Shown: positions 1 to 64,000 of the stretch, in pieces
How positions within the stretch are numbered: the first letter of the stretch is position 1
How the letters are laid out: each line of letters opens with the position of its first letter
Sequence record: MW879344.1
Strand: one strand, 5' to 3'
Length of the DNA stretch: 64,000 nucleotides
The notes under the pieces: generated by a model
Seen by the model: the letters and a program-made list of their open reading frames with translations, nothing else
The model's database searches: none
What the model was told of the DNA's origin: nothing
Program-made: the position numbers and the translations under genes

Positions 1-1
1 T

Positions 2-118
2 TTGAAACAAATGAATGCTACACAAGGTACTGGTAAAGAATGGTACAAAATGCCTAAATCAATTGCATCTAATATGATAGATTCAGTACTTGATGATTTA
101 GAAGAAGGCTTGCTATAA
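2..118 (+). CDS. 3' end of a hypothetical protein (partial, runs off window start)
   Basis: Open frame LKQMNATQGTGKEWYKMPKSIASNMIDSVLDDLEEGLL ends at TAA 116-118. Not in the ORF track. Confidence 0.55.
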   Translation: MKQMNATQGTGKEWYKMPKSIASNMIDSVLDDLEEGLL

Positions 119-121
119 TCA

Positions 122-128
122 ATAAATA
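122..128 (+). promoter_or_regulatory. putative late promoter (ATAAATA, T4 TATAAATA-like)
   Basis: ATAAATA about 35 nt upstream of the tail-fibre ATG. The same motif precedes most structural genes in the window. Confidence 0.6.
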
Positions 129-162
129 TCTTTATAATATATAAACGCGAGGACTGATTTAT

Positions 163-1842
163 ATGAGTATAAGATTTAATCATGCCAGTAATACAGTTAC
201 TGGTACAGATGTAATCAAATTAGTGGTTGAAGGTGGGACACCAACTGCACCAAGACCATTTAGAATTGATTCATCTTCAGTTATTATGCCTAACAAACAA
301 TTACCTTCTGGTGAAGCAGGGGCATTAGTTTTTGATATTGTATCAAAAACATTAAAATATCATAATGGTATTTCATGGGTAGAGTTATTATCACAAGATG
401 ATATTCTAGCACCTATACAAATATCATTAACGGACATTTATAACCAATTAGCGAACCGTGTAAGTACTGTAACATATAGTACCAGTTCAGTACCTTCTGC
501 GTCCGTAAGTGGAACAAACTTAAATATCATATTTCCATCATCAGGTGGAGGTGGTGGCACAGACATTCCTGGATTATTCACTTCTTCTCCACCAGGTTCT
601 ATCATGCAATATTCTTTGTCATCTGGTCAATCTGTTGCATCTATCAGAGAACAAATGAGTGGTGTTAGTGGTGGACAAAATGGTAGAAATGGTACAGCTT
701 CAGCTCCATATGTAACAAAAACTGGATGGTGTTTTGCAGATGGTTCTTATTGGACATGGAATGGAGAAAGTGGTTCAGTAACCAAAGTTGTTCCAAATTT
801 AAACCAAAATGCATATTTAAAAGGTATAACCACAACTGGTCTTACTAAGACAGATGCAGTAATTTCAGGTTCAGGTTCAATAGGAAATACGTCAATATCT
901 TTCCCACAACACTATCATGGTACTGGTATGATGGTTGGATTATCTGGTGATTGGGGTGATGATGGATATTTCATTAGTAATAAAACATGGAATGATGGAA
1001 TACAATATCAGGGAGTACAGATAACAGGTGATTTACAACGTAGAACAACTGGTCCAGTTAACGGTTCAGATGCTCGAACAGCATTAAGCACTTCTTTAGC
1101 AATATTCACTGGTTCAGATACTACTTCTCATACTCACAGCTTAAATAGTGTTGACGTAGCTCACTTTAATGTTGCTGTGGTATATAATATTGCAGAACCA
1201 AGCTCAGCACTTAATCAAAATGCTGGTGATCGCCGTTATGTATTAAAATCTGGTGATACTATGACTGGTTCATTGACTATCGCTAATAGTGCTGCAATTC
1301 AAGCAAATGATACAAATCTAGTACTATGGTTTAGAAATGCATCTGGTGGTGAACGTGCTGCAATATATCATGCATCTAATACTAATACTCTTAGATTGCG
1401 TACTGCTGGTGGTTCTGAAATGTCATTAAATAATGTAGGACTATTAAATGTGGCCTCAATTACTACTGGTTCAATTACAGGTTCATCATTGAACATATCT
1501 GGTACAGCAACAACTGGCCCATTAAATGTTAATGGACAAATAACAGCCACTGGTGATATTTGGGCATTCTCTGATGAAAGATTGAAAGAAAATATTAAAC
1601 CTATTGAAAATGCCGTAGATATAATTAAAAGTATTCGTGGTGTAACTGGTAATTTTATTGGAGATGAACGTACACGTTCAATGGTTATTGCTCAAGAAGT
1701 CCAGAAGAACTTCCCTTGTGCTGTAACTGAAGATGTATCAGGATTCTTAAAAGTTAATTATGATGCCCTTATTCCATTGTTGTTAAATGCAGTCTCTACT
1801 ATGAGTGAAGAAATTGCAAGTTTAAGGAGCATAATTAAATGA
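163..1842 (+). CDS. tail fibre/spike protein with collar-like domain and C-terminal peptidase-S74 intramolecular chaperone
   Basis: G/S/T-rich fibre sequence; collar-like PPGSIMQY..GWCFADG..VPNL..YLKG; autocleavage motif WAFS|DERLKENIKPI followed by VxYDALIPLLLNAV coiled coil. Confidence 0.9.
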   Translation: MSIRFNHASNTVTGTDVIKLVVEGGTPTAPRPFRIDSSSVIMPNKQLPSGEAGALVFDIVSKTLKYHNGISWVELLSQDDILAPIQISLTDIYNQLANRVSTVTYSTSSVPSASVSGTNLNIIFPSSGGGGGTDIPGLFTSSPPGSIMQYSLSSGQSVASIREQMSGVSGGQNGRNGTASAPYVTKTGWCFADGSYWTWNGESGSVTKVVPNLNQNAYLKGITTTGLTKTDAVISGSGSIGNTSISFPQHYHGTGMMVGLSGDWGDDGYFISNKTWNDGIQYQGVQITGDLQRRTTGPVNGSDARTALSTSLAIFTGSDTTSHTHSLNSVDVAHFNVAVVYNIAEPSSALNQNAGDRRYVLKSGDTMTGSLTIANSAAIQANDTNLVLWFRNASGGERAAIYHASNTNTLRLRTAGGSEMSLNNVGLLNVASITTGSITGSSLNISGTATTGPLNVNGQITATGDIWAFSDERLKENIKPIENAVDIIKSIRGVTGNFIGDERTRSMVIAQEVQKNFPCAVTEDVSGFLKVNYDALIPLLLNAVSTMSEEIASLRSIIK

Positions 1843-2405
1843 TACCATGTACTGGAACGATAAAAGCATCAGATATTAATACTGAATTGGGAAGAACACC
1901 AACATCTATATTTCAAATTGGAAATACACCAGAAAGAACTCTTGCAGGTAAGCCATCTGGTTTGATAAAATTTAGTGATTTCTATTGTAAATCATCTGCT
2001 GATCCGTTACCTTGGTTCTTATATGAGGTACAGCAAACTGGTGGTCGTGGTGTAAACAAAGACCCAGCAGTATTCCGTGTTATTGATGGTAGCTATTCTG
2101 TATTTTGGGGTGGTAGTAACGGTTGGTTGAAGTTTAACAATCATTTCACTGGTACTATTCGTCAAATTGAAGTTACTTGGAAATATTCTGGCAGAAATGG
2201 TGGTTGGCATGGTATAACTGTTTATGAACGTACCAATTCTGCAAGTACTTACAGATTAGATAACAATACGGGAATCCAAAAATTTGTTTTAGATGTTAAC
2301 ATACCAGCCGATCAAGAGATATGGTTGAATTGGTCTGGTGGTGGTGATCAGGGTGATGGTAACAACGTAGATTATGTAGCTATCACTAATGTAGTTTATT
2401 ACTAA
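1839..2405 (+). CDS. tail-fibre-associated virion protein
   Basis: Overlaps the fibre stop codon. N-terminal IPCTGTIKASDINTELG..SGLIKFSDFY motif is typical of small fibre-adjacent proteins; beta-rich C-terminus. Confidence 0.6.
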   Translation: MIPCTGTIKASDINTELGRTPTSIFQIGNTPERTLAGKPSGLIKFSDFYCKSSADPLPWFLYEVQQTGGRGVNKDPAVFRVIDGSYSVFWGGSNGWLKFNNHFTGTIRQIEVTWKYSGRNGGWHGITVYERTNSASTYRLDNNTGIQKFVLDVNIPADQEIWLNWSGGGDQGDGNNVDYVAITNVVYY

Positions 2406-2412
2406 AAATTTT

Positions 2413-2441
2413 TGGAACGACAAAAAAACATATGGTATAAT
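2413..2441 (+). promoter_or_regulatory. phage middle-type promoter TGGAAC-N17-TATAAT with extended -10
   Basis: TGGAAC 2413-2418, 17-nt spacer ending TATGG, TATAAT 2436-2441. One of 12 copies. Confidence 0.8.
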
Positions 2442-2858: not shown

Positions 2859-5800
2859 ATGTATATAGATGGATATATGGATAGAAAACGTACTGGTGAA
2901 GTTCTGCATGTGGCTGAACGTGTCAATGGTCAACGTATCTTACGTGAAATTGAACCAGTTTACGAGTATTATGTAGAATCACCATATGGTACATTTAAAA
3001 CAATCAACGGAACCTTAGCTGAACGTTTTGAATTTACTAGATATTCCGAAATGAAGAAACAAATGGATACATTACCTAGTACTGCACAGATTTTTGAAGC
3101 AGATTGTAATGTTACATTCAAAACATTAGCTAAACACTATATGGGTAAGTCATCACCTGATTTGAATATCGTATTTTTCGATATTGAAACGGACTTTCAC
3201 CCAAAGTTCGGCTATGCGTCACCTAGTGATCCTTTCAATAGAGTTACTGCAATTTCATTATATCAAAGCTGGACAGGTAAGGATTATGTACTTACTATGG
3301 CACCATCCGAGATGGAAATTGTAGAAGCACAAGATATTATCAACCGCTTGAATGCAGAAACTGATGATCCGAATAGTACTGTAGTACTTTATACTGATGA
3401 ATGTGAAATGTTCTCAGATTTCTTCGATTTGATTGAAGATTCTGATGTTTTATCTGGTTGGAACAGTGAGTTTTATGATATTCCTTATATGGTAAACCGA
3501 ACTCGTAAATTGTTTAATGAAGCAACTCTTGCTCGTTGGTGTTTATGGAATCGTAAACCAAATCCTCGTGAAGCAGATATGTTTGGTAAAACAATTGTAA
3601 CTTATGATTTAGTAGGTCGCGTACATTTGGATTACCTAGCACTATACAAAAAACATGCTGGTCAAGTAGAACAATCATATAAATTGGATTATATCGCAGA
3701 AAAAGTCACTGGTGAAAACAAAGTAGCATATGATGGGTCTTTGGATAAATTATATCGTGAAGATTATCTAAGATTTCTACGTTATTCCAAACAGGATAGT
3801 ATTCTTCTAAAGAAAATTGATGATAAGATGGATTTCATCAACCTACACAATCGATTGGCTCATAAAGAGTGTGTTCTAATAAGTACCACAATGGGTTCTG
3901 TAGCACTAATTGATACTGCAATCATCAATCTAGCTCATAAACGCGGTGAAGTAGTATTCAACAAGCGTAAACTTGACGATGATGAAGATGATTTCGATTA
4001 TCAAGAGTATGAAATGGATTATGAAGATGAAGATGAAGACAATGATGAACCAAAAGCAGGTTCTAAAGCAGCAGGTGCATGGGTTCAAGATCCAGTACTT
4101 GGTTTAATCGACTTCTTAGGCTGTGTAGACTTCAACTCACTATATCCAACAGTTCTACGTGCATTAGGTATGAGTACTGAATGTATTCTTGGTCAATTGC
4201 GTCAAACATATACAGATGCATATCTTGCTGAACGTATTGAAGAACAACGTATGAAATATCGTGGAAAAGGTCGATTTGAGCCTAAATGGACTGAAGCATG
4301 GCATGGTTTATTTGCAAGTGTTGAATTTACTATGGTTCGTGAAAAATCAGATGGTATAATTACTGTTGATTTAGAAGATGGTTCATCATTCCAAGCAACT
4401 GGTGCAGAACTATATGATATTATCTATGGTGAAGGTAGTACTATAGTACTAAGTGCGAACGGAACGTTATTTGATAAGACAAAGTACGGTGTTATTCCAG
4501 AAATTCTTACAATTTGGTATTCTGAACGTAAAGCACAACAAAAAATGGTTATTGACTATAAGCATCTTGCAACAGATGGATGGGAATTAGCTGAAGAAAT
4601 CGTTTCAGAATTGGAAGAAGCGTTGAAATCACTACAATATGGTGATAAAATTCACAAAACCAACTTACATGAGGATGATCCAGTATATCTAATTCGCTTA
4701 GCACTAGCGAAGGGTGATATTGAAGGAACAGCAAAACTTATTGCTGAAAATGGTATGCGTTTTGAAGGTGGTAAGGTGTTTGCACCTGAAAGTGATAAAA
4801 AATACTGTAAAACACAGTCTGCATTCTGGAAACAGAACCAACAGATTCGTAAAATTCTTCTAAACTCACTATACGGTGCTTTGTTGAATAAAGGTTCTCG
4901 TTTCTTCGACAAACGTCTAGGACAATCAGTAACGTTAACTGGTCGTAGTATGACTAAACACCTTGCAAGTAAGATAAATGAAGTATGCACTGAAACTTAT
5001 GATCATAGTGGTGGTGTTGTAGTATATGGTGATACCGACTCAGTGTATTTTAGTGTAGCACACTATTATAAAGAGAATGATATACCGTTTGACATGTCCA
5101 AAGAAGAAGTAATTGAACTATATCAGATGATTGGTGATACCGTAGGTGCATCATTCCCTTCATTTATGGATGAAACCTTTAATACTGGTATTGATAATGG
5201 TAAAATTGTGGGAGCAGACTTAGAAATGGTTGGTTCTCGTGGATTATTCTTGAAAAAGAAACGTTATGCTATCCTAAAATATTGGGAAGATGGATTCCGT
5301 TTAGATGTTGATGGAAAACCTGGTAAGGTTAAAGCGATGGGTCTTGAGATTAAACGTTCTGATACACCAAAATATATTCAAAACTTCCTAGAAGATACAC
5401 TTACTGCATTACTTGTTGGTGCAGAGGAAGAAGAATTACGTGCTAAGGTTCGTGAATTCAAGAAACTATTCAAAGATCGTCCATCATTTGAGAAAGGTCA
5501 ACCTAAAACAGTTAAAAATTATTCTAATAAGTTTAAAGAATATGAAGAAACTGGTCAATGTAGGGTAGGACACGTTCTTGCAGCAATACAATGGAACAAA
5601 TTGCGTACCATTTATGATGATATGTCAGTTCCAGAAGCAACTGACGGTACTAAAGTTATCGTTTGTAAGTTAAAACCAAACCCATATGGTATTAAATCCG
5701 TTGGTTATCCAATAGATTGTACTGAATACTTACCTGAGTGGTTCTTATCATTGCCATTTGATGATGATGATATGGAAAAAGCCGTTCTTACTAAGAAATT

Positions 5801-5891
5801 AGGTAACATTTTTGGTATTTTGGATATGGATTTGGCAATAAATGAAAAAAGTTCCATCGAATTGAACACTGGTTTCTTTGCATGGAGTTAA
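2859..5891 (+). CDS. gp43: family B DNA polymerase (T4 gp43-like)
   Basis: Exo I DIETDF, Exo II GWNSEFYD, Exo III YSKQD; polymerase motifs DFNSLYP, KILLNSLYG, YGDTDS, KKRY. Confidence 0.98.
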   Translation: MYIDGYMDRKRTGEVLHVAERVNGQRILREIEPVYEYYVESPYGTFKTINGTLAERFEFTRYSEMKKQMDTLPSTAQIFEADCNVTFKTLAKHYMGKSSPDLNIVFFDIETDFHPKFGYASPSDPFNRVTAISLYQSWTGKDYVLTMAPSEMEIVEAQDIINRLNAETDDPNSTVVLYTDECEMFSDFFDLIEDSDVLSGWNSEFYDIPYMVNRTRKLFNEATLARWCLWNRKPNPREADMFGKTIVTYDLVGRVHLDYLALYKKHAGQVEQSYKLDYIAEKVTGENKVAYDGSLDKLYREDYLRFLRYSKQDSILLKKIDDKMDFINLHNRLAHKECVLISTTMGSVALIDTAIINLAHKRGEVVFNKRKLDDDEDDFDYQEYEMDYEDEDEDNDEPKAGSKAAGAWVQDPVLGLIDFLGCVDFNSLYPTVLRALGMSTECILGQLRQTYTDAYLAERIEEQRMKYRGKGRFEPKWTEAWHGLFASVEFTMVREKSDGIITVDLEDGSSFQATGAELYDIIYGEGSTIVLSANGTLFDKTKYGVIPEILTIWYSERKAQQKMVIDYKHLATDGWELAEEIVSELEEALKSLQYGDKIHKTNLHEDDPVYLIRLALAKGDIEGTAKLIAENGMRFEGGKVFAPESDKKYCKTQSAFWKQNQQIRKILLNSLYGALLNKGSRFFDKRLGQSVTLTGRSMTKHLASKINEVCTETYDHSGGVVVYGDTDSVYFSVAHYYKENDIPFDMSKEEVIELYQMIGDTVGASFPSFMDETFNTGIDNGKIVGADLEMVGSRGLFLKKKRYAILKYWEDGFRLDVDGKPGKVKAMGLEIKRSDTPKYIQNFLEDTLTALLVGAEEEELRAKVREFKKLFKDRPSFEKGQPKTVKNYSNKFKEYEETGQCRVGHVLAAIQWNKLRTIYDDMSVPEATDGTKVIVCKLKPNPYGIKSVGYPIDCTEYLPEWFLSLPFDDDDMEKAVLTKKLGNIFGILDMDLAINEKSSIELNTGFFAWS

Positions 5892-5904
5892 AAAGGAAAT
5901 ATAT

Positions 5905-6369
5905 ATGACCAATGAAGTAAGCATTTATCAGCGTATTGGAGAAGCCATTGCTTCTAAGGGATTGTACAATATTATTAGAGCTACAACACCTGATGAAGAA
6001 ACAATTCTCGAAGATTCTGGTTTTATCAAAGTTGGTTCAATTAAAGAGGGTGATGTTATCACATCTCTTTACAAAATTGAACTAAAAGAGAAAGAAGTTA
6101 TCAAAATTGTAGAAGTACCAAAGATTAGTTCACCACCTTGGGGAAATCAACCAATTGATACTTCTCCGTGGAATAACAAACCTTATATCATGTACACAAA
6201 TGGTACTGGTGATGCGGAATGGTTAAAAAATCTTTATACTAATAGCAAATCAGATAACTATACTGCTAATTATATGGGTTCTGATATTAAATCTAATTCA
6301 TTAGTTGGTGAAGTTGTGAACGTATTGAATTCTATTGAAAAAAATACAAAAGCTTGTAGAAATATTTAA
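5905..6369 (+). CDS. hypothetical protein
   Basis: ORF with AAGGA SD ahead of ATG 5905; no recognisable motif. Confidence 0.6.
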   Translation: MTNEVSIYQRIGEAIASKGLYNIIRATTPDEETILEDSGFIKVGSIKEGDVITSLYKIELKEKEVIKIVEVPKISSPPWGNQPIDTSPWNNKPYIMYTNGTGDAEWLKNLYTNSKSDNYTANYMGSDIKSNSLVGEVVNVLNSIEKNTKACRNI

Positions 6370-6386
6370 AAAAATATTTAAAAATA

Positions 6387-6415
6387 TGAAACGTATACGA
6401 ATTATATGGTATAAT
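6387..6415 (+). promoter_or_regulatory. middle-type promoter TGAAAC-N17-TATAAT, overlapped by an inverted repeat
   Basis: TGAAAC 6387-6392, TATAAT 6410-6415; inverted repeat 6391-6424. Confidence 0.85.
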
Positions 6416-6446
6416 CGTATACGTAAACAACATGGAGAATTAACAA

Positions 6447-7178
6447 ATGGAATTACGTGACGTACTACGCGACCTAGTAACTACTACGGCAGGAATTGAT
6501 TTTGATTGTATCGCTATTTCAAGCGAAGATCGTGGTCAAGGCCAAAGAATTTACATGGAAGCTTATACAAGTGATAAAAACCTAGTAATGCGAGCCGTTA
6601 CTAAAGAAGATGTATCTGAAGTTGTTGGTCGTTTTGGTATTGGTAATCTTGGAATGCTTCAAGGTCTATTGAACCTAAATGTCTACAAATCAGACAGTAC
6701 TAAAATTAGTGTGAATGCAAAAGATGGCGTGGTTAAAAGTCTATCCTTTACTTCAGACGATGCAAATACCAACTATCTAGTAGTTGCAGAGAAATTTATT
6801 CCACCTCAACCGCGTTTTACTGACCAACCATATGACGTACAGGTTACACCTAGTGCATCAAAGGTCAATGAACTAAAAAGCTTCTCAGGCGTGTTTAAAT
6901 CTTTTACTGCTCACGTTACCCCTTATACTGAGGATAACAGCTTATACTTCTACGTAGGTGAAAAGAATAAAAACAACCATACTGGTACTTTACTATTCTC
7001 TAAGACAGATGGCGATCTAACTCAGGGTTATGGTTATCCAATTGAACGTGTTCTTCAAGCATTGAATCGTGTAAACAATGCTGAACAAAAATCTCTTGGT
7101 ATTACAAAAACTGGTATGTTAAATGTAACTGTTGATACTGGTATTGCAGTTTATAGCATCTACGTAAGTGGTTGCTAA
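6447..7178 (+). CDS. gp45: sliding clamp (T4 gp45-like)
   Basis: 243 aa with alternating beta/alpha pattern; EVVGRFGIGNLGMLQGLLNL aligns with gp45 DFDVAIYDLNGFLGILSL; under a replication-type promoter. Confidence 0.7.
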   Translation: MELRDVLRDLVTTTAGIDFDCIAISSEDRGQGQRIYMEAYTSDKNLVMRAVTKEDVSEVVGRFGIGNLGMLQGLLNLNVYKSDSTKISVNAKDGVVKSLSFTSDDANTNYLVVAEKFIPPQPRFTDQPYDVQVTPSASKVNELKSFSGVFKSFTAHVTPYTEDNSLYFYVGEKNKNNHTGTLLFSKTDGDLTQGYGYPIERVLQALNRVNNAEQKSLGITKTGMLNVTVDTGIAVYSIYVSGC

Positions 7179-7184
7179 TTAAAT

Positions 7185-7208
7185 TGGGGGAATGTTCCCC
7201 CATTTTTT
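7185..7208 (+). terminator. intrinsic terminator
   Basis: TGGGGGA-atgt-TCCCCCA plus T6. Confidence 0.75.
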
Positions 7209-7222
7209 ATTTGGAAAAGAAA

Positions 7223-7837: not shown

Positions 7838-7849
7838 AAGGAATGAAAT

Positions 7850-8059
7850 ATGCCACTATATACGTATCGTTGTACAAAAGAAGAATGTACACATAGTGTA
7901 GAAAAGATTGTAAAAATTGCGGAACGTGAGACAACTGTACTTGATTGTCCAGAATGTGGTACTGAACAAAGTATGCAGTATGAAAGATATACCTCTGGTG
8001 ATAAAGGTAGTAATTTATACTTCAGGGGTAATTGGTTCGCCAATACAGGCGGCTACTAA
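7850..8059 (+). CDS. FmdB-like zinc-ribbon protein
   Basis: MPLYTYRC..EC...CPECG with C-terminal FRGNWF. Confidence 0.85.
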   Translation: MPLYTYRCTKEECTHSVEKIVKIAERETTVLDCPECGTEQSMQYERYTSGDKGSNLYFRGNWFANTGGY

Positions 8060-8083
8060 AAGTATTTGAATGGAGTCAATACT

Positions 8084-9089: not shown

Positions 9090-9121
9090 AAAAAAGGAGA
9101 ACAAATTTGTTCTCCTTTTTT
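9088..9121. terminator. bidirectional terminator between convergent genes
   Basis: Palindrome A-tract-GGAGAACAAATTTGTTCTCC-T-tract. Confidence 0.88.
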
Positions 9122-9133
9122 CGTTTTTATATA

Positions 9134-54486: not shown

Positions 54487-54490
54487 ACCA

Positions 54491-54574: not shown

Positions 54575-57500
54575 ATGGCAAACTTCGAACCCAAATGGGA
54601 TTTGAGAGCTGATACCAATTCAATTAAAGAAGGACAGACCACATACTTTAGACTGCGAATTTCTAAAAGTCAAACAACTTCACCAAATAATGAATATGTA
54701 CTTCAAGATGATCAATATCTTGAATTTACATTTAACATTGTTGGGGCAGGGGAAACTTTAGAAGAACGTGATTTTAATGTATCTATAGGTGAAAGTACTT
54801 CTTCTTTAGTTCCAATCGGTGAAGCTGGAACTGGAACCCCTCATATTCAGGGTAAACATGTAGTAAAACTTAGTAGAAAAGATTTCCAATTAAGTTCAAG
54901 CGTAACATTCATTGATGCATTCTTTTTTAAAATAGAATGTCCTGAAGATGGTATATGGGATGGTCCAGAATCATTAACATTTAACATTGACAGCATAAAT
55001 GAAATTACTCTTTTAGATGGTCAAATTGCAAATACAATGCCAAGTGGGGTATTGGGAACTAGTACACAAGTACTGAATTATAATACTGCTGGAGAAATTT
55101 GGCTAACACCTAATTTAACGACCCACGGTGATAATCTTTATACAATTGGTGGTATTGGATATGGTGCCGAAAGTAGATTGTTCATTCAAGCATTTGGACA
55201 AAGTAGAACAATAAATGGTGTAACTAATGTTTTTATGCCATCGTATGAAGTGCAAGATATAACAATGTCAGATATTCCATCTGAACATATTACTGGTTCA
55301 GGAACAATTTTAGTACCGGATGAATCGGCACTACCTTCTATTCCAGAATATCCTATAACTTTAGGTACTACTAGGAATCAAATAAATTCATTTTATATGA
55401 AGAATGTTGCTAATTTAATGTCTGGTGCTGGTTGTATTATTCAAGGAACTACACTAACAGATCATAATAATGAACTCTATTATAGTTATGGAATAAGAGT
55501 ATATGCAAATACTGGTTTCAAATTAATGTGTCCAGCAGAAGCAGAAAGTATATATGTAAGTAATGTAAATGCTGTAAATGCAGGTGGTATAAATTCTTCA
55601 TTGTCTGAATTAACAGAATATGGTATATTAGATACGAACAAAATTGGTAGATGTGATATATATGGTAATGTAAAACATGAACCACAAACAATAGTCTTAC
55701 CACCATCCACTACCGGTGGTCAAATGGTAATTTATATTCGAGTTAAGGTTAGTAATACAATTTGCCCACCTTGGATTTCATTTAATGTAATATCATTTAA
55801 TAGTCCAATTCTAAAATCTTCTAATACATTGGATAATAGAATTTATATTAACACAAACAGTACTGCATTAAATTCAGTTGAACTAGATAACATTTTACAT
55901 GCAGCAGTTGCTGGTTCTGGATGGACAACATCATATAATGCCAATAATACAAAAAATCAAGTACCAAATACTATAGAACCAGTTGAGATTCGAAAATTAG
56001 AGGAAAACTCTATTATGATCAGAGATGAAATTGGAAATATGGTACAATCAGGATTGAAATTTAATGCTAATGGACAATTTGTTCAAACATTCATTTATGA
56101 TTCAGAACCAGTAGATGCATATTTTCGTGCAACTATTCTTTCTATAAAGGATTTTTATAATACTGATACTGATGCATACTATGTTGGTAAAAGATTCCGT
56201 GCATATAATGTATGGGTTTGTCCAGCAGATGTTACTAACTTCTCAACAAAACCAAAACCTGGACATTTATATCAATTAAAAGATACTAAAGTATATCCTT
56301 ATGTTGTTAAAGATACTGTTGTTGAAGGTATAACTAAAATTTTATTTGAAGAAGATAAATGGTACGATTTAGGATTGTATAATGAATCATTAGGTGCTAA
56401 TATCATAGGTTCCGAAAGGATGTTTAGAATTGTAGTTAATGATGATACTGGTACTGATATTTCTTTTGAAACTGATTCCAACTTAGGTGAAATTCATGTT
56501 GGTGAATATTTTGGTCATACGGTTTATCCAAAAATCGTTGCAACTGGTTCAGAATTAATAACCTACACAATAAATGCAAGTACTTCACCAAATGATATTA
56601 CAAAGTACGGAATAGATTTAACTGCTGATGGATTTATTGTAGGGGAAGCATATGCATTAAGTACTGATTTTTCTGCCAATGATGACATACCTTTGCAGTT
56701 CGATGTAGTTGCAACTGGTAAAAACGGTAAATCATTGACACAACGTTTTAAAATTCGTATAGTTCGTGGTTTAGGTCAAAACTTCTTACATGCTGATATT
56801 TGTCCATCACTTTCATTAGAACGTGCATGGTTCAGAATGATTAGTACTACAGCATTTAGTAGAGCAAATTACTATCGTGCATCAGATCCAAGATATGGTG
56901 TTAAGAAAGTCCCACGCATTCTTATGAAAGAAAACTTCGTTGATCCTAATAAGAATTGGGAAGGGATAAAACAAACCGTATTAAATATTCGAAATGGTAT
57001 TGTTGATACAGCACATGGTGCACCTACACCAGATGGTTCATTCCGACTAGTACTAGGGAATTATAAATTACGTTCAGCACTTGACAATCAAGGAAATGTA
57101 CTGTATGATGTTCTATACAGAGAGTTACATTCAGAAGGAACACAAGTAAGTTTAAGTTTAAATCCATTGAAATATACTGATTATTCAACATCACTTATTT
57201 CAGAAATTTATGGTCTACGTCAAAATGTGTACAACATTGTTGGTGAAGATACTGTGAACTTATTAACTGATCCTACAGATTTGAACAATCGTGGTATAGT
57301 AGTTGATCCTATTAACGGATTATCAGTTGAAATGCTAGATACAGTTCCTCGTTATATGAACCATCCATATGTTGAAGATAACATTAAGCCAATGTACTTC
57401 CCATGTATACCAGTTGCTTACTTACAACCAGGACAAGGGGAAGTATTCTTTAATACATTGATTCAAAATAACGAACATGGTACATTACTCAATACTGAGT

Positions 57501-57604
57501 TTGAAGTTTCTGGAGTTGAATTCAGTTACTTCGTACAAGACAATGAGAGATACGTACCAGAAACCTTTATGGCCTCATTAAGAGTGCCGAACCTATTTCA
57601 ATAA
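54575..57604 (+). CDS. large virion structural protein (baseplate wedge-like)
   Basis: 1009 aa, beta-rich Ig-like character, late motif upstream. Confidence 0.6.
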   Translation: MANFEPKWDLRADTNSIKEGQTTYFRLRISKSQTTSPNNEYVLQDDQYLEFTFNIVGAGETLEERDFNVSIGESTSSLVPIGEAGTGTPHIQGKHVVKLSRKDFQLSSSVTFIDAFFFKIECPEDGIWDGPESLTFNIDSINEITLLDGQIANTMPSGVLGTSTQVLNYNTAGEIWLTPNLTTHGDNLYTIGGIGYGAESRLFIQAFGQSRTINGVTNVFMPSYEVQDITMSDIPSEHITGSGTILVPDESALPSIPEYPITLGTTRNQINSFYMKNVANLMSGAGCIIQGTTLTDHNNELYYSYGIRVYANTGFKLMCPAEAESIYVSNVNAVNAGGINSSLSELTEYGILDTNKIGRCDIYGNVKHEPQTIVLPPSTTGGQMVIYIRVKVSNTICPPWISFNVISFNSPILKSSNTLDNRIYINTNSTALNSVELDNILHAAVAGSGWTTSYNANNTKNQVPNTIEPVEIRKLEENSIMIRDEIGNMVQSGLKFNANGQFVQTFIYDSEPVDAYFRATILSIKDFYNTDTDAYYVGKRFRAYNVWVCPADVTNFSTKPKPGHLYQLKDTKVYPYVVKDTVVEGITKILFEEDKWYDLGLYNESLGANIIGSERMFRIVVNDDTGTDISFETDSNLGEIHVGEYFGHTVYPKIVATGSELITYTINASTSPNDITKYGIDLTADGFIVGEAYALSTDFSANDDIPLQFDVVATGKNGKSLTQRFKIRIVRGLGQNFLHADICPSLSLERAWFRMISTTAFSRANYYRASDPRYGVKKVPRILMKENFVDPNKNWEGIKQTVLNIRNGIVDTAHGAPTPDGSFRLVLGNYKLRSALDNQGNVLYDVLYRELHSEGTQVSLSLNPLKYTDYSTSLISEIYGLRQNVYNIVGEDTVNLLTDPTDLNNRGIVVDPINGLSVEMLDTVPRYMNHPYVEDNIKPMYFPCIPVAYLQPGQGEVFFNTLIQNNEHGTLLNTEFEVSGVEFSYFVQDNERYVPETFMASLRVPNLFQ

Positions 57605-57613
57605 GGAGGATTT

Positions 57614-57916
57614 ATGTTTCATCCGTTTTTCGATCCTTCATCTTTAAGTGATAAAGAACTTTATGATAAAATCACTGAAGTTTCGCTTCGTATAAGTGCT
57701 GCTCGTTCAGCAGGTATACAATACGAAATGATACAATCTATGTTCACCGTAATTCAAGCTTGTGAGTTTGAGATTCAGAATCGCCAAGCTCACAAAGACT
57801 TGGAGCAAGCGGCAAAAGAAGATAATTGTATTTTTGATTCAGACAGCTATTTAAATGACAAAGATGATAAGAAACATGAAAGTACAAGAAAACAGAACTA
57901 TAAGCGAGGATGGTGA
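57614..57916 (+). CDS. hypothetical protein
   Basis: AGGAGG SD; overlaps the dnaE N-fragment. Confidence 0.65.
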   Translation: MFHPFFDPSSLSDKELYDKITEVSLRISAARSAGIQYEMIQSMFTVIQACEFEIQNRQAHKDLEQAAKEDNCIFDSDSYLNDKDDKKHESTRKQNYKRGW

Positions 57917-58394
57917 TGTACGTTTAAATCTGAACGCCGTGGTTTATGCAATAAATTGCGGCACAGATATTACATATATCCAGCTTAATGAGCAAGATGA
58001 ATTTGAACGTTTAAAGTTCAATGACAACTGCAAGAAATTTGGACTATCGGAACGTATGTTAGATTACACCATAGAACATGATAAAAATCATGAATTATGG
58101 CGGTATGATCCAGCTTATGATAAAATCAACTTAGAAGATTATTTTCTTTCTTTATGTAGTACTGATATAGAACGTGATAGAGTACTATATGAATTAAGTT
58201 TATATGAAAACTATAACATGACTAAACTATTACGCTGTATGATATGGTTGGTAGATTACCTAGAAGAACATAATATTTTTTGGGGATTAGGTCGTGGAAG
58301 TTCCGTAAGTAGCTTCTGTTTATACTTGATTGGATTACACTTAGTTGATTCAGTTAAATATGAATTAGATGTGAATGAATTTTTGAAATGGTAA
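57876..58394 (+). CDS. dnaE: DnaE-like N-terminal palm/thumb fragment (N-part of a split C-family polymerase)
   Basis: DRVLYEL, WGLGRGSSVSSFCLYLIGLHLVDSVKYELDVNEFL aligns with DnaE [34 protein letters not shown]; start 57855 or 57876. Confidence 0.88.
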   Translation: MKVQENRTISEDGDVRLNLNAVVYAINCGTDITYIQLNEQDEFERLKFNDNCKKFGLSERMLDYTIEHDKNHELWRYDPAYDKINLEDYFLSLCSTDIERDRVLYELSLYENYNMTKLLRCMIWLVDYLEEHNIFWGLGRGSSVSSFCLYLIGLHLVDSVKYELDVNEFLKW

Positions 58395-58412
58395 AAAAAT
58401 TTATGGTATAAT
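58384..58412 (+). promoter_or_regulatory. middle-type promoter TGAAAT-N17-TATAAT
   Basis: Exact spacing, TATGG before the -10. Confidence 0.8.
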
Positions 58413-58442
58413 ATACCAGTAGTACAGTGAAAAGGGATTTTT

Positions 58443-58817
58443 ATGAAAAAACATACTAGCTATCGCGGTCAGAAAATCGATATGGAAATGTTGAAATTTC
58501 AACATCAATATAGCGTAGCCGTTGGTAACGCAAACATGAATGCACGTGGCGATATTATTGGTCGTGGCGGCACTGTTGTTAAGAAGCGTGAAGAACTATT
58601 AGCAGAACGTGAACGTGAATTGCAAAAACCTGACATTAGTCCAGAACACCAAAGCCATTCTATGGCACCACAAATGGGTGATCCTATGGCATTTGCTGAT
58701 GATGGTTTTGATGATACACAGTTTGAAAGTTCCTCAACAGGTGAACCAATAGAAGAACCTGTAGAGAAAAAAGCACCAGTAAAACGTGCAAGAACTAAAG
58801 ACACGGACGCAGAATAA
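58443..58817 (+). CDS. hypothetical protein
   Basis: GQKIDM...AVGNANMNARGDIIGRGG. Confidence 0.7.
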   Translation: MKKHTSYRGQKIDMEMLKFQHQYSVAVGNANMNARGDIIGRGGTVVKKREELLAERERELQKPDISPEHQSHSMAPQMGDPMAFADDGFDDTQFESSSTGEPIEEPVEKKAPVKRARTKDTDAE

Positions 58818-58827
58818 GGAAATTAAC

Positions 58828-59148
58828 ATGGAGTCAAAAGTACTTAATGCCTGTAAAGGTAAAGTTCTAGTATCTGATTTAGATTCAGGTGAACAAGTTT
58901 TAAAATCCGGTATTGTCCTACGTGATGATGACGGTAAAGTACGTGGTGTACATAGTCGTTGGGCTAAAGTATATTCCGTAGGTGAAGATGTAACCGATCT
59001 TAAAGCTGGTGAATGGATTTTGGTATCTCATGGTAGATGGTCAAGAACTATTACAGTAGACGGTGTATCATTAAATTTAGTAGATTATCCTAAAGGTATC
59101 TTAGCAGCCTGTGATGAACGGCCTGACTTCCTTGGATTAGGATATTAA
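58828..59148 (+). CDS. groES: second co-chaperonin, GroES/gp31-like, lacking the roof hairpin
   Basis: GKVLV, KSGIVL mobile loop, AKVYSVGEDVTDLKAGEWILV, ILA. Confidence 0.8.
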   Translation: MESKVLNACKGKVLVSDLDSGEQVLKSGIVLRDDDGKVRGVHSRWAKVYSVGEDVTDLKAGEWILVSHGRWSRTITVDGVSLNLVDYPKGILAACDERPDFLGLGY

Positions 59149-59154
59149 TAACTT

Positions 59155-59180
59155 GCCCTGCATATGCAGGGCTTTCTTTT
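59155..59180 (+). terminator. intrinsic terminator
   Basis: GCCCTGC-atat-GCAGGGC-tttctttt. Confidence 0.75.
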
Positions 59181-59193
59181 TGTCGGTACTTTT

Positions 59194-59484
59194 ATGAGCG
59201 TAACTACAGATAACAAATTCAATTTTTATGATGTTAAGTTGGTTTCAACTAATAAATCTGGAAAGTTCTACTTTGAAGCTGCAAAGAATAGATCTAGAGT
59301 TTATGAAGTATCAGAGGATTTATTCAAAACGATGCTGGTTGCAGCAGCACAAAGAAGAAACACCAGTGAAGATTCAAGTGCATTAGCAAATTCATTTGAT
59401 TATCTTTTTGACCAACTAGAAATGACCGAAGAAATTTTTACAGCTTTACTATATCCAGAATGGATTAATGAAAACAAGGAATGA
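59194..59484 (+). CDS. hypothetical protein
   Basis: Start moved past the terminator to ATG 59194. Confidence 0.55.
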   Translation: MSVTTDNKFNFYDVKLVSTNKSGKFYFEAAKNRSRVYEVSEDLFKTMLVAAAQRRNTSEDSSALANSFDYLFDQLEMTEEIFTALLYPEWINENKE

Positions 59485-60440
59485 TTATGACCAGTCTATG
59501 GACAGAGAAGTACCGCCCAAATAATGTTGACGAATACGTATTCAAGAATCCAGCTTTTAAACTAAAGATGGAAGAATGGATCAGTACTGGTCAAATTCCA
59601 CATATTGGACTATTTGGACCAGCAGGTACAGGTAAGACTTCTGCCATTAAAGTACTAATTAATGGATTAGTCGAGAACGGATTCGTAGATCCATCCGATG
59701 TAACAACACTAAACATGTCAGATGAAGGTATGGATGCAGTACGTGATAAAATCGATGCTGCTGCTAGACTATCTGCATTTGGTGATTACCGTATCTTTGT
59801 ACTTGAAGAAATGGAACAAATGGGTTTAAAAGCTCAAGGTTCCTTAAAACGTATTATGGAAGATTATCACGAGAATGCTAGATTCATTCTTACTTCCAAT
59901 GAACCACACAAAATTATCAAACCAATTATCTCGCGTGTTCAATCTATCATGATTGAAAAACATGATCAAGATGAATTTACTACTCGCATCATTGAGATTC
60001 TTATCAATGAAGGTGTAGAACTAGATACTGAAGAAAGTTTAGATCTCGTTAATAAGTACATTAAATGTACATTCCCTGACTTCCGCAAAACATTAAACAC
60101 GTTGCAAAGTTCAGTAGTTGGTGGTAAGCTAGTACGTCTAGAGGAATCTATTGACAGTACTGCAAGCTATCGTGCAGCTATTATTGATGCACTTAAAGAA
60201 GGTAATATTCGTCAAATGCGGGAACGTATTGTTCAGAATATTCCCGAAGATGAAATTGATGGATTCTTCTCATTCTTATATCAGAATGTAGATATGTTCA
60301 CTACTGATGAAATCAAAGAAATGAAAATCAAGGTTAAGATTCGTGATGCTGTTGTAAAACAAGCGAACGTTTCTGATAGAGAAATGAATCTATCTGCACT
60401 TCTATGTGAAGTTGACCTTATTTGCCACGATCAAATGTAA
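59481..60440 (+). CDS. gp44: clamp-loader large subunit (gp44/RFC-like AAA+)
   Basis: LWTEKYRP, GPAGTGKT, LEEME, SRV(Q), DFRKTLNTLQ. Confidence 0.94.
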   Translation: MIMTSLWTEKYRPNNVDEYVFKNPAFKLKMEEWISTGQIPHIGLFGPAGTGKTSAIKVLINGLVENGFVDPSDVTTLNMSDEGMDAVRDKIDAAARLSAFGDYRIFVLEEMEQMGLKAQGSLKRIMEDYHENARFILTSNEPHKIIKPIISRVQSIMIEKHDQDEFTTRIIEILINEGVELDTEESLDLVNKYIKCTFPDFRKTLNTLQSSVVGGKLVRLEESIDSTASYRAAIIDALKEGNIRQMRERIVQNIPEDEIDGFFSFLYQNVDMFTTDEIKEMKIKVKIRDAVVKQANVSDREMNLSALLCEVDLICHDQM

Positions 60441-60451
60441 TAGGAAATTAA

Positions 60452-61075
60452 ATGCAAAACATGAAAAAGAAAGCAGTCATTTTTGACTGTGATGAAATTC
60501 TGTTAAATCATCTAGGTGGTTTTAAAAAGTACGTTCAGAAGTACTATGATATTGAAACTATCGGTGAGCCAATGCAATACAATTTACAAGATTGGTTACG
60601 CTGCGATGGTGAACAAGTGATGGATCTGTTGAAGAATTTCAACTTCTATTCATATGAGTTTGGACTTCTTGAACCTATGGATGAATTTACAGTTCAACGT
60701 ATGAAAGAACTACGTGAAAATCATCCAGATGTTGAATTTATTGTAGTGACCAAAAGTGGTACATTCGGACATGGTGAAGTACTACGTAAGGTAAACTTAC
60801 ATAATGTATTTGGTGATATGTTTGATGATATTATTATTCTTGAAAACTATGCATCTAAGCGTGGAACATATAATAAGTTAATGAAACAATACAATGTTAT
60901 TACTGTTGTTGATGATCATCTAGCAAATATTGATGTAGCAAAACAATTAGGCTTAGATGCAGTAGTCTTGGAATGTTCACATAATGTTACAGAGAAGGAT
61001 AATCCTTTTTACAATTATGTTCAAAATTGGAATGAAATGTACAATTACATTGATGCAAAAATCAAAGGGGAGTGA
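60452..61075 (+). CDS. HAD-superfamily phosphatase (5'-nucleotidase-like)
   Basis: IFDCDEIL, VVTKS, VDDHLANI. Confidence 0.82.
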   Translation: MQNMKKKAVIFDCDEILLNHLGGFKKYVQKYYDIETIGEPMQYNLQDWLRCDGEQVMDLLKNFNFYSYEFGLLEPMDEFTVQRMKELRENHPDVEFIVVTKSGTFGHGEVLRKVNLHNVFGDMFDDIIILENYASKRGTYNKLMKQYNVITVVDDHLANIDVAKQLGLDAVVLECSHNVTEKDNPFYNYVQNWNEMYNYIDAKIKGE

Positions 61076-61085
61076 TCCCCTTTTT
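61064..61085 (+). terminator. intrinsic terminator
   Basis: AAAGGGGA-gtga-TCCCCTTT-TT. Confidence 0.75.
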
Positions 61086-61152
61086 GTATAAGTAAATAAG
61101 GTTATATTATTATGTTTCTCGCATGAGAAATAACCTTAAAGGAAAGATATAC

Positions 61153-61722
61153 ATGGATAGTTCACAAGCAATTCAAAATCTTTACGACCAAGACGGATTA
61201 CTAGATATTCTTCTTGGAGTTGAAGAATATTTTGATAATATGGATTTGTATGCTTATAAGAACTGGATATACGGTGAAGTAGTAGAAGGGCCAATCGTTA
61301 GTAAGTATTGGGTTGAAATTACTTTAAAATTTGATCACAATACGTTTCCAGATCCAGTAGCTACACAAATGTTTGAGAGACAAGGAACGAAAATCTTCAT
61401 TCGTCCTGATTGGGAAATTTACCCTGTTTCACACCCACGCGGTAATGAAGATATGCAAAGTGTTTTAGGTAATAGCTCAAGTATGAGAAAACCTAAAGAT
61501 GAACGTAAAGCAATTATTTTATATAAATTTCAAATTCCAAGACGTTTAGTTAATCCTGAAAGCTTCGATGAATATAAACTAATGGCATCAGATTTCAATA
61601 GCAATACTATGCAAGCTGAAGCTGATGACCCTGAGAAACAAGAACCTCAAGATCAAGAACAAATGGATCAGCAGGATCAAAGTGATGATATTCAATTCGA
61701 TGACCCACAAGGAGGATTATAA
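61153..61722 (+). CDS. hypothetical protein
   Basis: GTAAATA motif at 61092-61098; Q/D-rich tail. Confidence 0.65.
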   Translation: MDSSQAIQNLYDQDGLLDILLGVEEYFDNMDLYAYKNWIYGEVVEGPIVSKYWVEITLKFDHNTFPDPVATQMFERQGTKIFIRPDWEIYPVSHPRGNEDMQSVLGNSSSMRKPKDERKAIILYKFQIPRRLVNPESFDEYKLMASDFNSNTMQAEADDPEKQEPQDQEQMDQQDQSDDIQFDDPQGGL

Positions 61723-62405
61723 TGTCTAAGAGAATTTATGAACGTGCATTAAGACCACTAGTACTAAAAGATTTAGTACACCCTATCATCAGTGTTGATG
61801 AATATACGCCAAAAATTGATGATGATAATATCGTAGTATTATTTCAAGTACTAGATAATTTCGATGCTGCTTATGACCTAAGTTCATTTATCGAACGTTC
61901 ACCAGTTGAAGTAATTGATACTGAAGCTGCTGAAACTCCGAATGTTGATGGACGTTATCAGGTTTTTGTTGAGTTCGAACGAAATGGAGAATTCCCTGCA
62001 AAATTGATAGATTTAATTAAATCAATCGAAAACATTTGTCCTAATCCAGATTGGAAATTACAAATGTACGGTGTTAATGATCCTATAGATTTAGATATTG
62101 ATAAAATTACTGATGGTATGGAACTCGTTAATGAAGAAGATTTGAAAGAATTTTTTGATTTTGCACCTGTAAATGTAGAAATTTTAAAAGAATCCATTAA
62201 ACTTAGAAGTGTATATGGTTCAGAATTGCATTACAGCTTAGGTTCAGGTATAGTTAATGAGAGCTACGTTACTGGTCTTCTAAAAGAAGAAATGACACTA
62301 GATGGCACTCGTTTAAGTGCTGTACTAGGAGAAAACTATGACGTGCTAAGAAGTGGGAAAAACTACATTGTAGGCATCAACGGACGTTATATAGTACTAA
62401 GATAA
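61722..62405 (+). CDS. hypothetical protein
   Basis: Coupled ORF with GGAGG SD. Confidence 0.65.
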   Translation: MSKRIYERALRPLVLKDLVHPIISVDEYTPKIDDDNIVVLFQVLDNFDAAYDLSSFIERSPVEVIDTEAAETPNVDGRYQVFVEFERNGEFPAKLIDLIKSIENICPNPDWKLQMYGVNDPIDLDIDKITDGMELVNEEDLKEFFDFAPVNVEILKESIKLRSVYGSELHYSLGSGIVNESYVTGLLKEEMTLDGTRLSAVLGENYDVLRSGKNYIVGINGRYIVLR

Positions 62406-63199: not shown

Positions 63200-63218
63200 A
63201 TTTATTTTCGTCCTTTTT
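63188..63218 (+). terminator. intrinsic terminator (AAGGACG family)
   Basis: AAAAGGACG...CGTCCTTTTTT. Confidence 0.72.
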
Positions 63219-63229
63219 TATTTTCTCCC

Positions 63230-63317
63230 TTGACAGGGGTCACTTTTAAGCGTAGAATGTACCACATGAACACAGCGTAACAAAGTACTTGACAAAACGC
63301 TGAGTTCAATATAAAAT
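63230..63317 (+). promoter_or_regulatory. tandem canonical sigma70 (early) promoters
   Basis: TTGACA-N17-TAGAAT (63230-63258) and TTGACA-N17-TAAAAT (63289-63317). Confidence 0.85.
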
Positions 63318-63349
63318 CTTTCGAGTCAAAACCTAAAAAGGAAAAAGTA

Positions 63350-63940
63350 ATGAAAACTGTAAATTTCTTGTACACTGAAGGCGTTTCTTACAAAGCAACC
63401 AACGTTGAAAACATCGAGTCCGATGGTTATACTGTTGATTATTCTCGTACTGTTCAGAACGAATCTGGTACAGTTGTTGGGGTTGACTTCCGTTCTGTCA
63501 GTACCGAAGATTTGCTTTTCGCTACTGTAAAAGATCACAGTACTGGTATTGTTACAATCATCCCTGGTATCTACGATCATTTCGATATTGTGCCTAAAGG
63601 TAACGCGGTTACTCGTCAACAAAATATCGAACGCGAAGCGGCTGCCGTTGCAGCAAATCGTGCAGCAAAGGCACCAGAACGTAACGCTAAAGAACTTGCT
63701 AAGTTCGAAGCTCGCCGTGCAGCACGTAAAGCAGCATGGGAAGCTGAAAACGGCGTAACCCCTGTTGCCCCTGCTCCAACACCACGAGCCAAGGCTGTAG
63801 CTCCAGAAGCTCCTGTAATGATGATGAAAGCAGAGCCGACTCCTGCACCATCTGCAAATACTGCGATTGAACAGCTACGTAATGCTGGCGTTTCTGAAAG
63901 TGACATTGCAGTACTAAAATCTCTAAACGTGTTGAAATAA
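63350..63940 (+). CDS. putative early protein with A/R-rich helix and P/A-rich linker
   Basis: Behind early promoters; visibly higher GC than neighbouring genes. Confidence 0.7.
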   Translation: MKTVNFLYTEGVSYKATNVENIESDGYTVDYSRTVQNESGTVVGVDFRSVSTEDLLFATVKDHSTGIVTIIPGIYDHFDIVPKGNAVTRQQNIEREAAAVAANRAAKAPERNAKELAKFEARRAARKAAWEAENGVTPVAPAPTPRAKAVAPEAPVMMMKAEPTPAPSANTAIEQLRNAGVSESDIAVLKSLNVLK

Positions 63941-63941
63941 T

Positions 63942-63971
63942 TTGACACTCTGATAAAAAAGGATATATAAT
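63942..63971 (+). promoter_or_regulatory. possible sigma70 early promoter (TTGACA-N18-TATAAT)
   Basis: The -10 overlaps the ATG at 63970, so it cannot serve that ORF. Confidence 0.45.
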
Positions 63972-64000
63972 GGAAACCGGAAAATACTTAGTAGTATCGC
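63970..64000 (+). CDS. start of a hypothetical protein (partial)
   Basis: AAAGGA SD, then METGKYLVVS. Confidence 0.45.
   Translation, partial: METGKYLVVS

Follow-up and report, generated by a model that had tools for sequence, protein, structure and literature searches.

Phage genomes are usually read for the words that they avoid, and the stretch of DNA considered here raises the question of why a clade of phages keeps one palindrome of the restriction type at 4-10 times its expected frequency. This stretch, the window in the following, comprises 64,000 nucleotides of sequence record MW879344.1 (approximately positions 186001-250000), which belongs to Erwinia phage pEa_SNUABM_49, a Rak2-like jumbo phage of 358 kb, and the palindrome is the hexamer AGTACT. 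We consider it very probable that AGTACT is a symmetric signal which acts at the level of the DNA and is actively maintained, and the pressure for it is strong enough to rewrite protein sequences.

The annotated whole genome of Serratia phage BF (genus Eneladusvirus) was used as a stand-in for the full genome and as the source of gene identities. Over positions 14000-22000 of the window BF is 99.8% identical (pEa_SNUABM_49: 100%), followed by Yersinia phage fHe-Yen9-04 (88%), Pectobacterium phage CBB and Cronobacter phage GAP32 (both 81%), and jumbo phages of E. coli, Klebsiella and Erwinia (about 75%). With respect to its gene content the window is a replication module, in which genes for DNA polymerase, terminase, single-strand DNA binding protein, UvsX and primase-helicase are interspersed with genes for virion proteins, and which further contains ribonucleotide reductase, topoisomerase II and clamp loader genes.

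Over-representation of AGTACT

The window contains 142 AGTACT sites, or about one per 450 bp, in agreement with the hand count of about 140 given in an original prediction made from the letters of the window alone; the 20-25 sites expected there compare with 21.3 according to base composition and 18.1 under a first-order Markov model. Dinucleotide-preserving shuffles of the window yielded 17.6±4.2 sites with a maximum of 29. For the coding shuffles, 75 self-called open reading frames (ORFs) were used, which hold 138 of the sites. Against these 138, a synonymous-codon shuffle that keeps each protein and the codon counts of each gene gave 33.2±5.3 (z ~20), a shuffle of codon order 22.7±4.7, and the tightest shuffle, in which the proteins and every dinucleotide are fixed, 83.3±5.6 (z ~10). 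The excess thus outlasts codon- and dinucleotide-preserving shuffles, and the same-composition hexamers ACTAGT (15-16 copies) and TGTACA (27 copies), which the original prediction had proposed as controls, are at or below expectation in the window. In the whole BF genome AGTACT ranks first of all 4096 hexamers for over-representation (1072 copies vs 98-120 expected), and a protein-preserving shuffle there gave 234±14 as compared to 923 observed.

The excess is nested in shorter words, as the window has 453 copies of GTAC (vs 199-318) as well as 259 of AGTAC and 213 of GTACT (vs about 60 each), and a maximal-order Markov model built from the enriched 5-mers already predicts 122 AGTACT sites. 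With the protein sequence controlled, AGTACT is enriched 3.9x, variants at the outer positions 1.1-1.6x, variants at the inner positions 0.9-1.2x and TGTACA 1.0x. GTAC alone is ruled out as the real unit: TGTACA stands at 0.9-1.0x, GGTACC at zero, and strong enrichment is found only for cores flanked by A..T.

Frames, symmetry and spacing

By reading frame, the sites in plus-strand genes of the window fall into AGT-ACT (67), xxA-GTA-CTx (50) and xAG-TAC-Txx (16); by location, 133 lie in plus-strand genes, four in minus-strand genes and five in non-coding DNA. Relative to synonymous expectation, AGTACT is enriched 3.4x, 5.0x and 4.5x in the three frames. The original prediction was therefore right in placing AGTACT in all three frames and outside genes too, and the sites that it named are all present (3375 and 3383, 16367, 12054 and 12069, 63284). 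Two of these locations illustrate the use of different frames:

3375..3388, plus strand: two AGTACT sites 8 bp apart and in two different frames, within the DNA polymerase gene (BF annotation)
16367..16372, plus strand: a site in the third frame (xAG-TAC-Txx), within the single-strand DNA binding protein gene (BF annotation)

Genome-wide, BF has 3.47 sites per kb of non-coding and 2.93 per kb of coding DNA. The flanks are mirror-symmetric, with C at -1 and G at +1 favoured and G at -1 and C at +1 disfavoured, as is evident from five copies of GAGTACTC vs 72 of CAGTACTG in BF and from a frequency of G at -1 of 0.09 vs a background of 0.19. In addition, variant words that are reverse complements of each other behave alike. 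Taken together, the occurrence in all frames and in non-coding DNA and the symmetry suggest that the word is recognised on double-stranded DNA in a twofold-symmetric manner, and they speak against causes at the level of RNA or translation; a motif acting in RNA is unlikely, as the symmetry extends to flanks and variant pairs alike and the density in non-coding DNA equals that in genes. Likewise there is no strand or orientation bias of the kind seen in Chi-like words, since the word is a palindrome with symmetric flanks and its variant pairs are alike.

Past one flanking base the surroundings of AGTACT carry almost no information, and the spacing between sites in BF is close to exponential, i.e. 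Poisson-like. The sites are therefore independent copies and not parts of a repeat, and a longer repeat or array as their source is ruled out.

Effects on proteins and maintenance of sites

The most over-represented dipeptide of BF is Ser-Thr (780 vs 490 expected, 1.59x), with Thr-Ser at 1.04x and Val-Leu at 1.39x, and 451 of the 780 Ser-Thr dipeptides are written AGTACT, as compared to 115 predicted from codon usage. Conservation was assessed in 29 orthologous genes (window 2859..62405, plus strand; 30.5 kb of alignments) from seven genomes, which represent three named genera and two unclassified phages. At orthologue positions with AGT-ACT, genomes lacking the site encode different amino acids in 320 cases and the same in 50, so that new AGTACT sites have mostly arisen at the cost of an amino-acid change.

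Individual sites persist, albeit with turnover. Among 168 alignment positions with AGTACT in at least one of the seven genomes, nine have it in all seven and 73 in one only; even so, between the most distant pairs a fraction of 0.36-0.56 is retained, vs 0.16-0.17 for same-frame hexamers at equal divergence. Where Ser-Thr is conserved between four genome groups, AGTACT is kept in 84% of comparisons and the other Ser-Thr codon pairs in 12%, the codon-pair retention of degenerate dipeptides in general being 26%, and GTACT within Val-Leu is kept in 62% vs 25%. The same argument from conservation has been used to infer selection on the cyanobacterial palindrome HIP1 (Xu et al., PMC5861425).

Distribution in the clade and beyond

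Delimited by large-terminase identity, the clade comprises about 73 database records, with a wide gap to everything else. In six syntenic regions, namely those of fHe-Yen9-04, CBB, GAP32, the E. coli phage A4, WPEC5 and the Erwinia phage Hallingskeid, AGTACT ranks first or second among the over-represented hexamers, and it ranks second in a region of RaK2 (125 vs 11 expected). At the left genome ends, CBB has 266 sites in 50 kb and fEgEco12 (PP777464.1) 191 in 45 kb. The excess is common to all eight other clade members sampled besides BF, and the trait runs through the Rak2-like jumbo phages of Enterobacterales (Eneladusvirus, Mimasvirus, Asteriusvirus and Alcyoneusvirus) at about one site per 330-450 bp.

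No such excess is found in T4 (12 vs 8.8) or in E. coli K-12 (three vs 4.8 in the single 50-kb sample that served as host comparison), and in the stretch between 100 and 150 kb of PA5oct, a distant Pseudomonas relative, AGTACT is depleted (three vs 14.3). The latter is the usual behaviour of phages towards a site of the restriction type. When IMG/VR was scanned for groups of three sites no more than about 80 bp apart in total (at least 119 loci), dispersed enrichment was seen only in clade members among the matches listed, those listed from outside the clade being tandem repeats.

Paired sites in early promoters

A defined context for AGTACT is provided by a class of early promoters in which the last T of one site is the first T of the -35 hexamer (TTGCAA or TTGACA), and a second site 20-22 bp downstream ends one base before a TATAAT-like -10 hexamer, which places the two sites at approximately -40..-35 and -19..-14. 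In BF this pairing occurs 12 times, always on the strand of the gene and never on the opposite one, and 11 of the 12 are located in the first 17 kb; as read from listings of site pairs and not from a pattern count, there are about 15 pairs in CBB and 8-10 in fEgEco12. Some promoters of fEgEco12 are variants with the second AGTACT 23-24 bp upstream. This phage belongs to a different genus and its intergenic DNA cannot be aligned; the junction of AGTACT with TTGAC or TTGCA recurs in early promoters of BF, CBB and fEgEco12. The arrangement is as would be expected of operators for a dimeric regulator, with paired palindromes at fixed positions over promoter elements across three genera. The paired-site class is absent from the published promoter tables of CBB.

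Two features of the window pointed out in the original prediction belong here. The AGTACT beside the promoter placed at 63289 is real and is an instance of the conserved early-promoter feature, and the hairpin at 12054 does contain the word in both arms (sites 12054 and 12069):

63284..63317, plus strand: sigma-70-type promoter with TTGACA, a spacer of 17 nucleotides and TAAAAT (11 of 12 matches), AGTACT abutting the -35 hexamer and sharing its first T
12054..12074, plus strand: hairpin with AGTACT in each arm, a stem of 9 bp and a loop of three nucleotides, followed by a T run

With a predicted RNA folding energy of -11.7 kcal/mol (z -2.8), the hairpin is, judging from its sequence, likely an intrinsic terminator; it separates the terminase genes from the gene that follows RNase H, and a simple terminator scan of the window did not flag it. 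Directly after it, the large terminase (window 12090-14436) is encoded by two adjacent ORFs of 236 and 548 residues, which overlap by 11 bases in our own ORF calls and are likewise annotated as two in BF, CBB and GAP32. Elsewhere in this region, GAP32 has an HNH gene ahead of the exonuclease gene (corresponding to window ~19.6 kb), and in fHe-Yen9-04 extra ORFs split the small ribonucleotide reductase subunit (window 36.8-38 kb); both are absent from the window, and these additional genes in the replication and ribonucleotide-reductase genes are endonuclease-like insertions.

The density of sites in BF is 6.5 per kb in the first 25 kb, 2-3 per kb over most of the rest and 3.3-4.5 per kb in the last 60 kb, a profile with a step at the left end and no obvious period. 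Within the first 25 kb, non-coding DNA reaches 11.9 and coding DNA 4.7 sites per kb, and the non-coding sites cluster 42-46 and 62-67 nucleotides upstream of start codons. In fEgEco12 the high-density zone coincides with the terminal repeat. In BF and CBB, however, it ends at about 25 kb, while the terminal repeat ends at about 20 kb and 22.5 kb, respectively; these boundaries rule out a link to the terminal repeat, the coincidence being confined to fEgEco12. For the idea that AGTACT is a packaging or recombination cue nothing specific was found, the spacing being Poisson-like and the left-end rise in BF and CBB lying off the terminal-repeat boundary.

Avoided words and the ACT-free block

The enrichment of AGTACT contrasts with the fate of other palindromes. 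Restriction sites are avoided to an extreme degree: in the window 30 of the 64 six-base palindromes have no copy at all, including GATATC and CTTAAG with about 21 expected each, and in comparison with protein-preserving shuffles CTGCAG (0 vs 81), CAGCTG (0 vs 70) and GATATC (1 vs 87) are absent or nearly absent from BF. Non-palindromic words resembling type IIS sites are also at zero (GAAGAG/CTCTTC, GACATC/GATGTC, GAGACC, GAGACG, GAGGAG and ACTGGG), and words containing TGTGA, GTGAG, GAGTG or GTGTC are 4-6 times under-represented in BF, e.g., TGTGAC (20 vs 118) and TGTGAG (22 vs 118). The Chi octamer of E. coli, GCTGGTGG, in turn, occurs 24 times on the sense strand of BF as compared to 11.6±2.3 in synonymous shuffles, and 30 times on both strands as compared to 2.7 under a Markov model; examples lie at window positions ~788, 1404, 13804, 16585, 28215 and 28949 (BF 186814-214359 minus ~185,410). 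This moderate enrichment may be a defence against RecBCD.

A different kind of avoidance is seen in fEgEco12, where positions 29,019-37,312 do not contain a single ACT on the sense strand (about 215 expected), whereas AGT is normal. This block of 8.3 kb comprises about 23 small sense-strand ORFs; the avoidance extends over all frames, and the Thr codon ACT is down to 2%. It is kept in phage 121Q (NC_025447.1, ~161.4-169 kb; 82% identity) and throughout the Asteriusvirus genomes, and 33 other phage records match it, eight of them over most of its length; the BF genome has no ACT-free block. The block lacks AGTACT, but AGTACA is present in 46 copies vs 4.2 expected (11x), distributed over all three frames; of 36 copies aligned with 121Q, 23 are conserved there. 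As AGTACA is enriched precisely where ACT is forbidden, the pressure for the AGTAC part persists, which fits graded recognition better than the target of an all-or-none enzyme. Just past the terminal repeat, fEgEco12 further has a 5.8-kb array of ORFs of about 70 residues (20,857-26,616) with neither AGTACT nor a GTAC excess and with normal ACT, which has the appearance of DNA acquired by the clade only recently.

A dimeric DNA-binding factor as the putative reader

What might read the word is suggested by its symmetry and by the promoters. The explanation that we favour, albeit tentatively, is that a clade-specific dimeric factor binds the promoter pairs as well as the dispersed sites and prefers phage over host DNA. 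On this view, AGTACT would be recognised in double-stranded DNA by a reader that is itself twofold symmetric, and selection would keep the density of the word. The paired sites flanking the -35 and -10 hexamers would be occupied by a dimeric DNA-binding protein specific to the clade, which would probably switch the early promoters off or on, and the approximately 1000 dispersed sites would let this protein bind phage DNA in preference to the DNA of the host, which in the 50-kb sample has about 50 times fewer AGTACT per kb. The data show the excess and its action at the DNA level, its symmetry, its distribution in the clade, the retention of sites between genera, the effect on proteins and the architecture of the promoters; that a protein reads the word, and what its binding would entail, we infer from these patterns.

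A structural precedent for the promoter part may be seen in YefM, a dimeric repressor acting on paired TGTACA hexamer palindromes with a GTAC core over its own promoter (PMC1802561). The operators of the YefM/Phd family share with the promoters described here the paired 6-bp palindromes with a GTAC core over promoter elements, but differ in the outer bases (A..T in AGTACT, T..A in YefM sites) and in the spacing of the centres (20-22 bp here, 12 in YefM), and the phage genome carries about 1000 more copies. Moreover, no gene of the Phd/YefM family was found among the phage ORFs screened (40 of ~550).

As regards function, a possible analogue is TF1 of phage SPO1. This abundant protein binds selectively to the DNA of the phage and acts as a repressor of early promoters, and like TF1 the proposed factor would prefer phage DNA and act at early promoters. 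However, TF1 reads DNA containing hydroxymethyluracil, whereas here it would be the density of a word in unmodified DNA, and no HU-like gene is annotated in BF.

Several observations weigh against this explanation. Only about 25-50 of the 1072 sites in BF are located in promoters, the role of the other 95% being conjecture, and many of the promoters are evident duplicates of one another and thus do not represent independent evidence. The Poisson-like spacing gives no sign of cooperative arrays outside promoters, and a contiguous palindrome of 6 bp would be more usual as the target of a restriction or modification enzyme than as that of a transcription factor. Retention of sites above background would also be the expected outcome of a strong directional bias in repair or gene conversion. 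Finally, no reader protein was found among the 40 ORFs screened out of a genome of about 550, i.e. 20 ORFs of the window (10 with Pfam and 10 with PHROGs, one by both) and 20 of BF (with Pfam). In this set there was no match to DsbA, GapR, RHH, AbrB, Phd or HTH, so that the DsbA/GapR-like ORF named in the original prediction as candidate binding protein was not recovered; the sole DNA-binding family encountered was the T5orf172/MUG113 domain. The genes around the phage sigma factor gave no matches either, and a search for restriction-enzyme-like genes beside the methylases yielded no Pfam matches.

A bolder form of the proposal, about which we are rather more sceptical, is that these phages mark their own unmodified DNA by the density of AGTACT and not by base chemistry, and that the factor tells phage from host by this density. 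It would then time the early promoters via the paired sites and coat, protect or organise the replicating genome.

Alternative explanations

According to a first alternative, AGTACT is the target of an orphan DNA methyltransferase of the phages and, similar to HIP1, the methyl marks are the selected product; such marks might label the DNA as self, protect it, or act as a replication-coupled switch of early promoters, comparable to Dam sites in certain -10 and -35 regions. A palindrome of 6 bp is a classic type II modification target, and about 1000 ScaI-type sites are tolerated while nearly all other palindromes are purged, which is easiest to understand if the sites are protected. In addition, the sites adjoin the -10 and -35 hexamers, and RaK2 DNA has been reported to be methylated (PMC3622015). 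BF encodes three methylases, namely the Dam-type gp063 (PF05869), the N6/N4 enzyme gp151 (PF01555) and gp129. However, orthologues of gp151 occur in 18 records only and gp129 is confined to Eneladusvirus, and a C5 methylase common to RaK2, Asteriusvirus and Mimasvirus is absent from BF. Judged by co-occurrence, no methylase follows the trait across the clade, except possibly the small Dam-type gp063 family, which has homologues with 41-53% identity in the distant subclades of Asteriusvirus and the Klebsiella phages. This latter family presumably also counts against a methylase, as we take its member in phage T1 to be a GATC enzyme. Methylation alone, moreover, gives no reason why more sites should be better. 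Lastly, fEgEco12 DNA is cut as predicted by ten enzymes, a set that did not include ScaI, RsaI or TatI (PMC13070987), which argues against bulk modification. Given this balance we regard a methylase as a doubtful explanation.

The original prediction, in which a cognate methylase was put forward, can be followed in part: a DNA-level signal with signatures of selection or of a strong directional force is borne out by the data, in contrast to its particular versions invoking a methylase, a DsbA/GapR-like protein or a packaging or recombination cue.

Secondly, the directional force could be one without function, i.e. a sequence-directed mutational or repair bias, very-short-patch-like or in the form of a gene-conversion drive, that pushes near-cognate words to AGTACT, the word then accumulating wherever it is tolerated. 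In favour of this, replication of the T4 type is rich in recombination and heteroduplex DNA. In line with such a drive, the sites are densest in the least constrained DNA (11.9 per kb in early non-coding, 4.7 in early coding DNA and 2-3 over most of the genome), spacing is Poisson-like, and stretches that look recently acquired lack the word, e.g., 20.9-26.6 kb in fEgEco12. A Vsr-like sink is ruled out, however, as the one-step neighbours AGTATT and AATACT are not depleted (1.34x relative to the Markov model, 0.9-1.0x relative to the codon shuffle), and no Vsr-like gene is annotated in BF. The force is also strong enough to alter amino acids, fixed promoter positions in three genera point to use, and the retention of sites is of the kind that Xu et al. 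take as selection in the case of HIP1 (PMC5861425). A functionless drive is thus unlikely.

Less probable still is the assumption that AGTACT is the preferred action site of a dyad-symmetric DNA-processing enzyme of the phage, such as the T4-type topoisomerase II (window 51038-54486), cutting A/GTAC/T with a 4-base stagger, or a nicking or priming enzyme. The gate geometry of type IIA topoisomerases, with a 4-bp core and symmetric flanking bases, would fit, the topoisomerase genes are present and conserved, a genome of 358 kb would presumably be in heavy need of untangling, and the strong gyrase site of phage Mu provides a precedent for a selected site of this kind. However, the known site determinants of type II topoisomerases are loose and span about 12 bp (PMC3814380), while the surroundings of AGTACT are information-poor. 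No topoisomerase consensus matching AGTACT was found in the literature, and the fit is geometric only; T4, with an enzyme of the same family, has no excess and PA5oct depletes the word, and the placement in promoters is left unexplained.

There is also very little to recommend a protein of the enterobacterial host, e.g., SlmA, as the reader, the phage recruiting or soaking up the factor. In its favour, only phages of Enterobacterales show the trait, which the Pseudomonas relative lacks, and the binding site of SlmA, a nucleoid-occlusion factor, has what we take to be an AGTACT core. However, BF does not contain a full SlmA consensus with its GTG...CAC flanks, G at -1 and C at +1 being the most disfavoured (five vs 72 copies, see above) and GTG upstream of AGTACT occurring eight times vs 22 expected, which makes SlmA an unlikely reader, and the host sample itself is poor in the word (three in 50 kb).

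Finally, a by-product of codon usage, amino-acid content or dinucleotide bias, which might be suspected since AGT, ACT and GTA are codons in frequent use and coding is not considered in first-order models, can be dismissed with near certainty, because three shuffle models in the window and one genome-wide all fall far short, non-coding DNA is equally enriched, and it is the word that gives rise to the codon usage and the Ser-Thr excess, not the reverse.

Comparison with known iterated words

The nearest known phenomenon is HIP1 (GCGATCGC) of cyanobacteria, also a short palindrome that is many-fold over-represented (PMC5861425, PMC4390886) and that is found in all coding frames and in non-coding DNA, with sites conserved between genomes above background. 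The two differ in size and extent (8 bp and 15-300x for HIP1, 6 bp and 4-10x for AGTACT). Furthermore, AGTACT is found in viruses from which palindromes are otherwise purged, it is not tracked by any methylase across the clade, its local spacing is Poisson-like and it is tied to a defined promoter architecture; AGTACT thus represents a viral case of an iterated palindrome, and one whose regulatory context is defined.

Chi, DNA uptake sequences and KOPS are likewise short words held at high density by selection, which shape codon and peptide content. In contrast to AGTACT with its symmetric flanks, these words are asymmetric and orientation-dependent. The targets of type II restriction-modification systems (ScaI, AGTACT; RsaI, GTAC) have the same word and the same symmetry, but phages usually lose such sites, whereas AGTACT is enriched here and about 30 other palindromes are lost. 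In the searchable literature no mention was found of AGTACT enrichment, of the paired-site promoters or of the ACT-free block.

Implications for the biology of the clade

The phages of this clade are very large, and several are candidates for biocontrol or therapy. For these, restriction systems of the ScaI type should be very effective barriers unless the sites are protected. The word offers a handle on the organisation of early transcription, with a paired-site promoter class that is apparently undescribed, and on the question of whether phage DNA can be distinguished from host DNA without base modification. It also offers a handle on the 25-year-old question of what highly iterated palindromes are for, which would be far easier to test in a phage with a laboratory E. 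coli host than in cyanobacteria. Should the marking of phage DNA by word density prove true, a self-marking system based on sequence would have been described for the first time in a virus.

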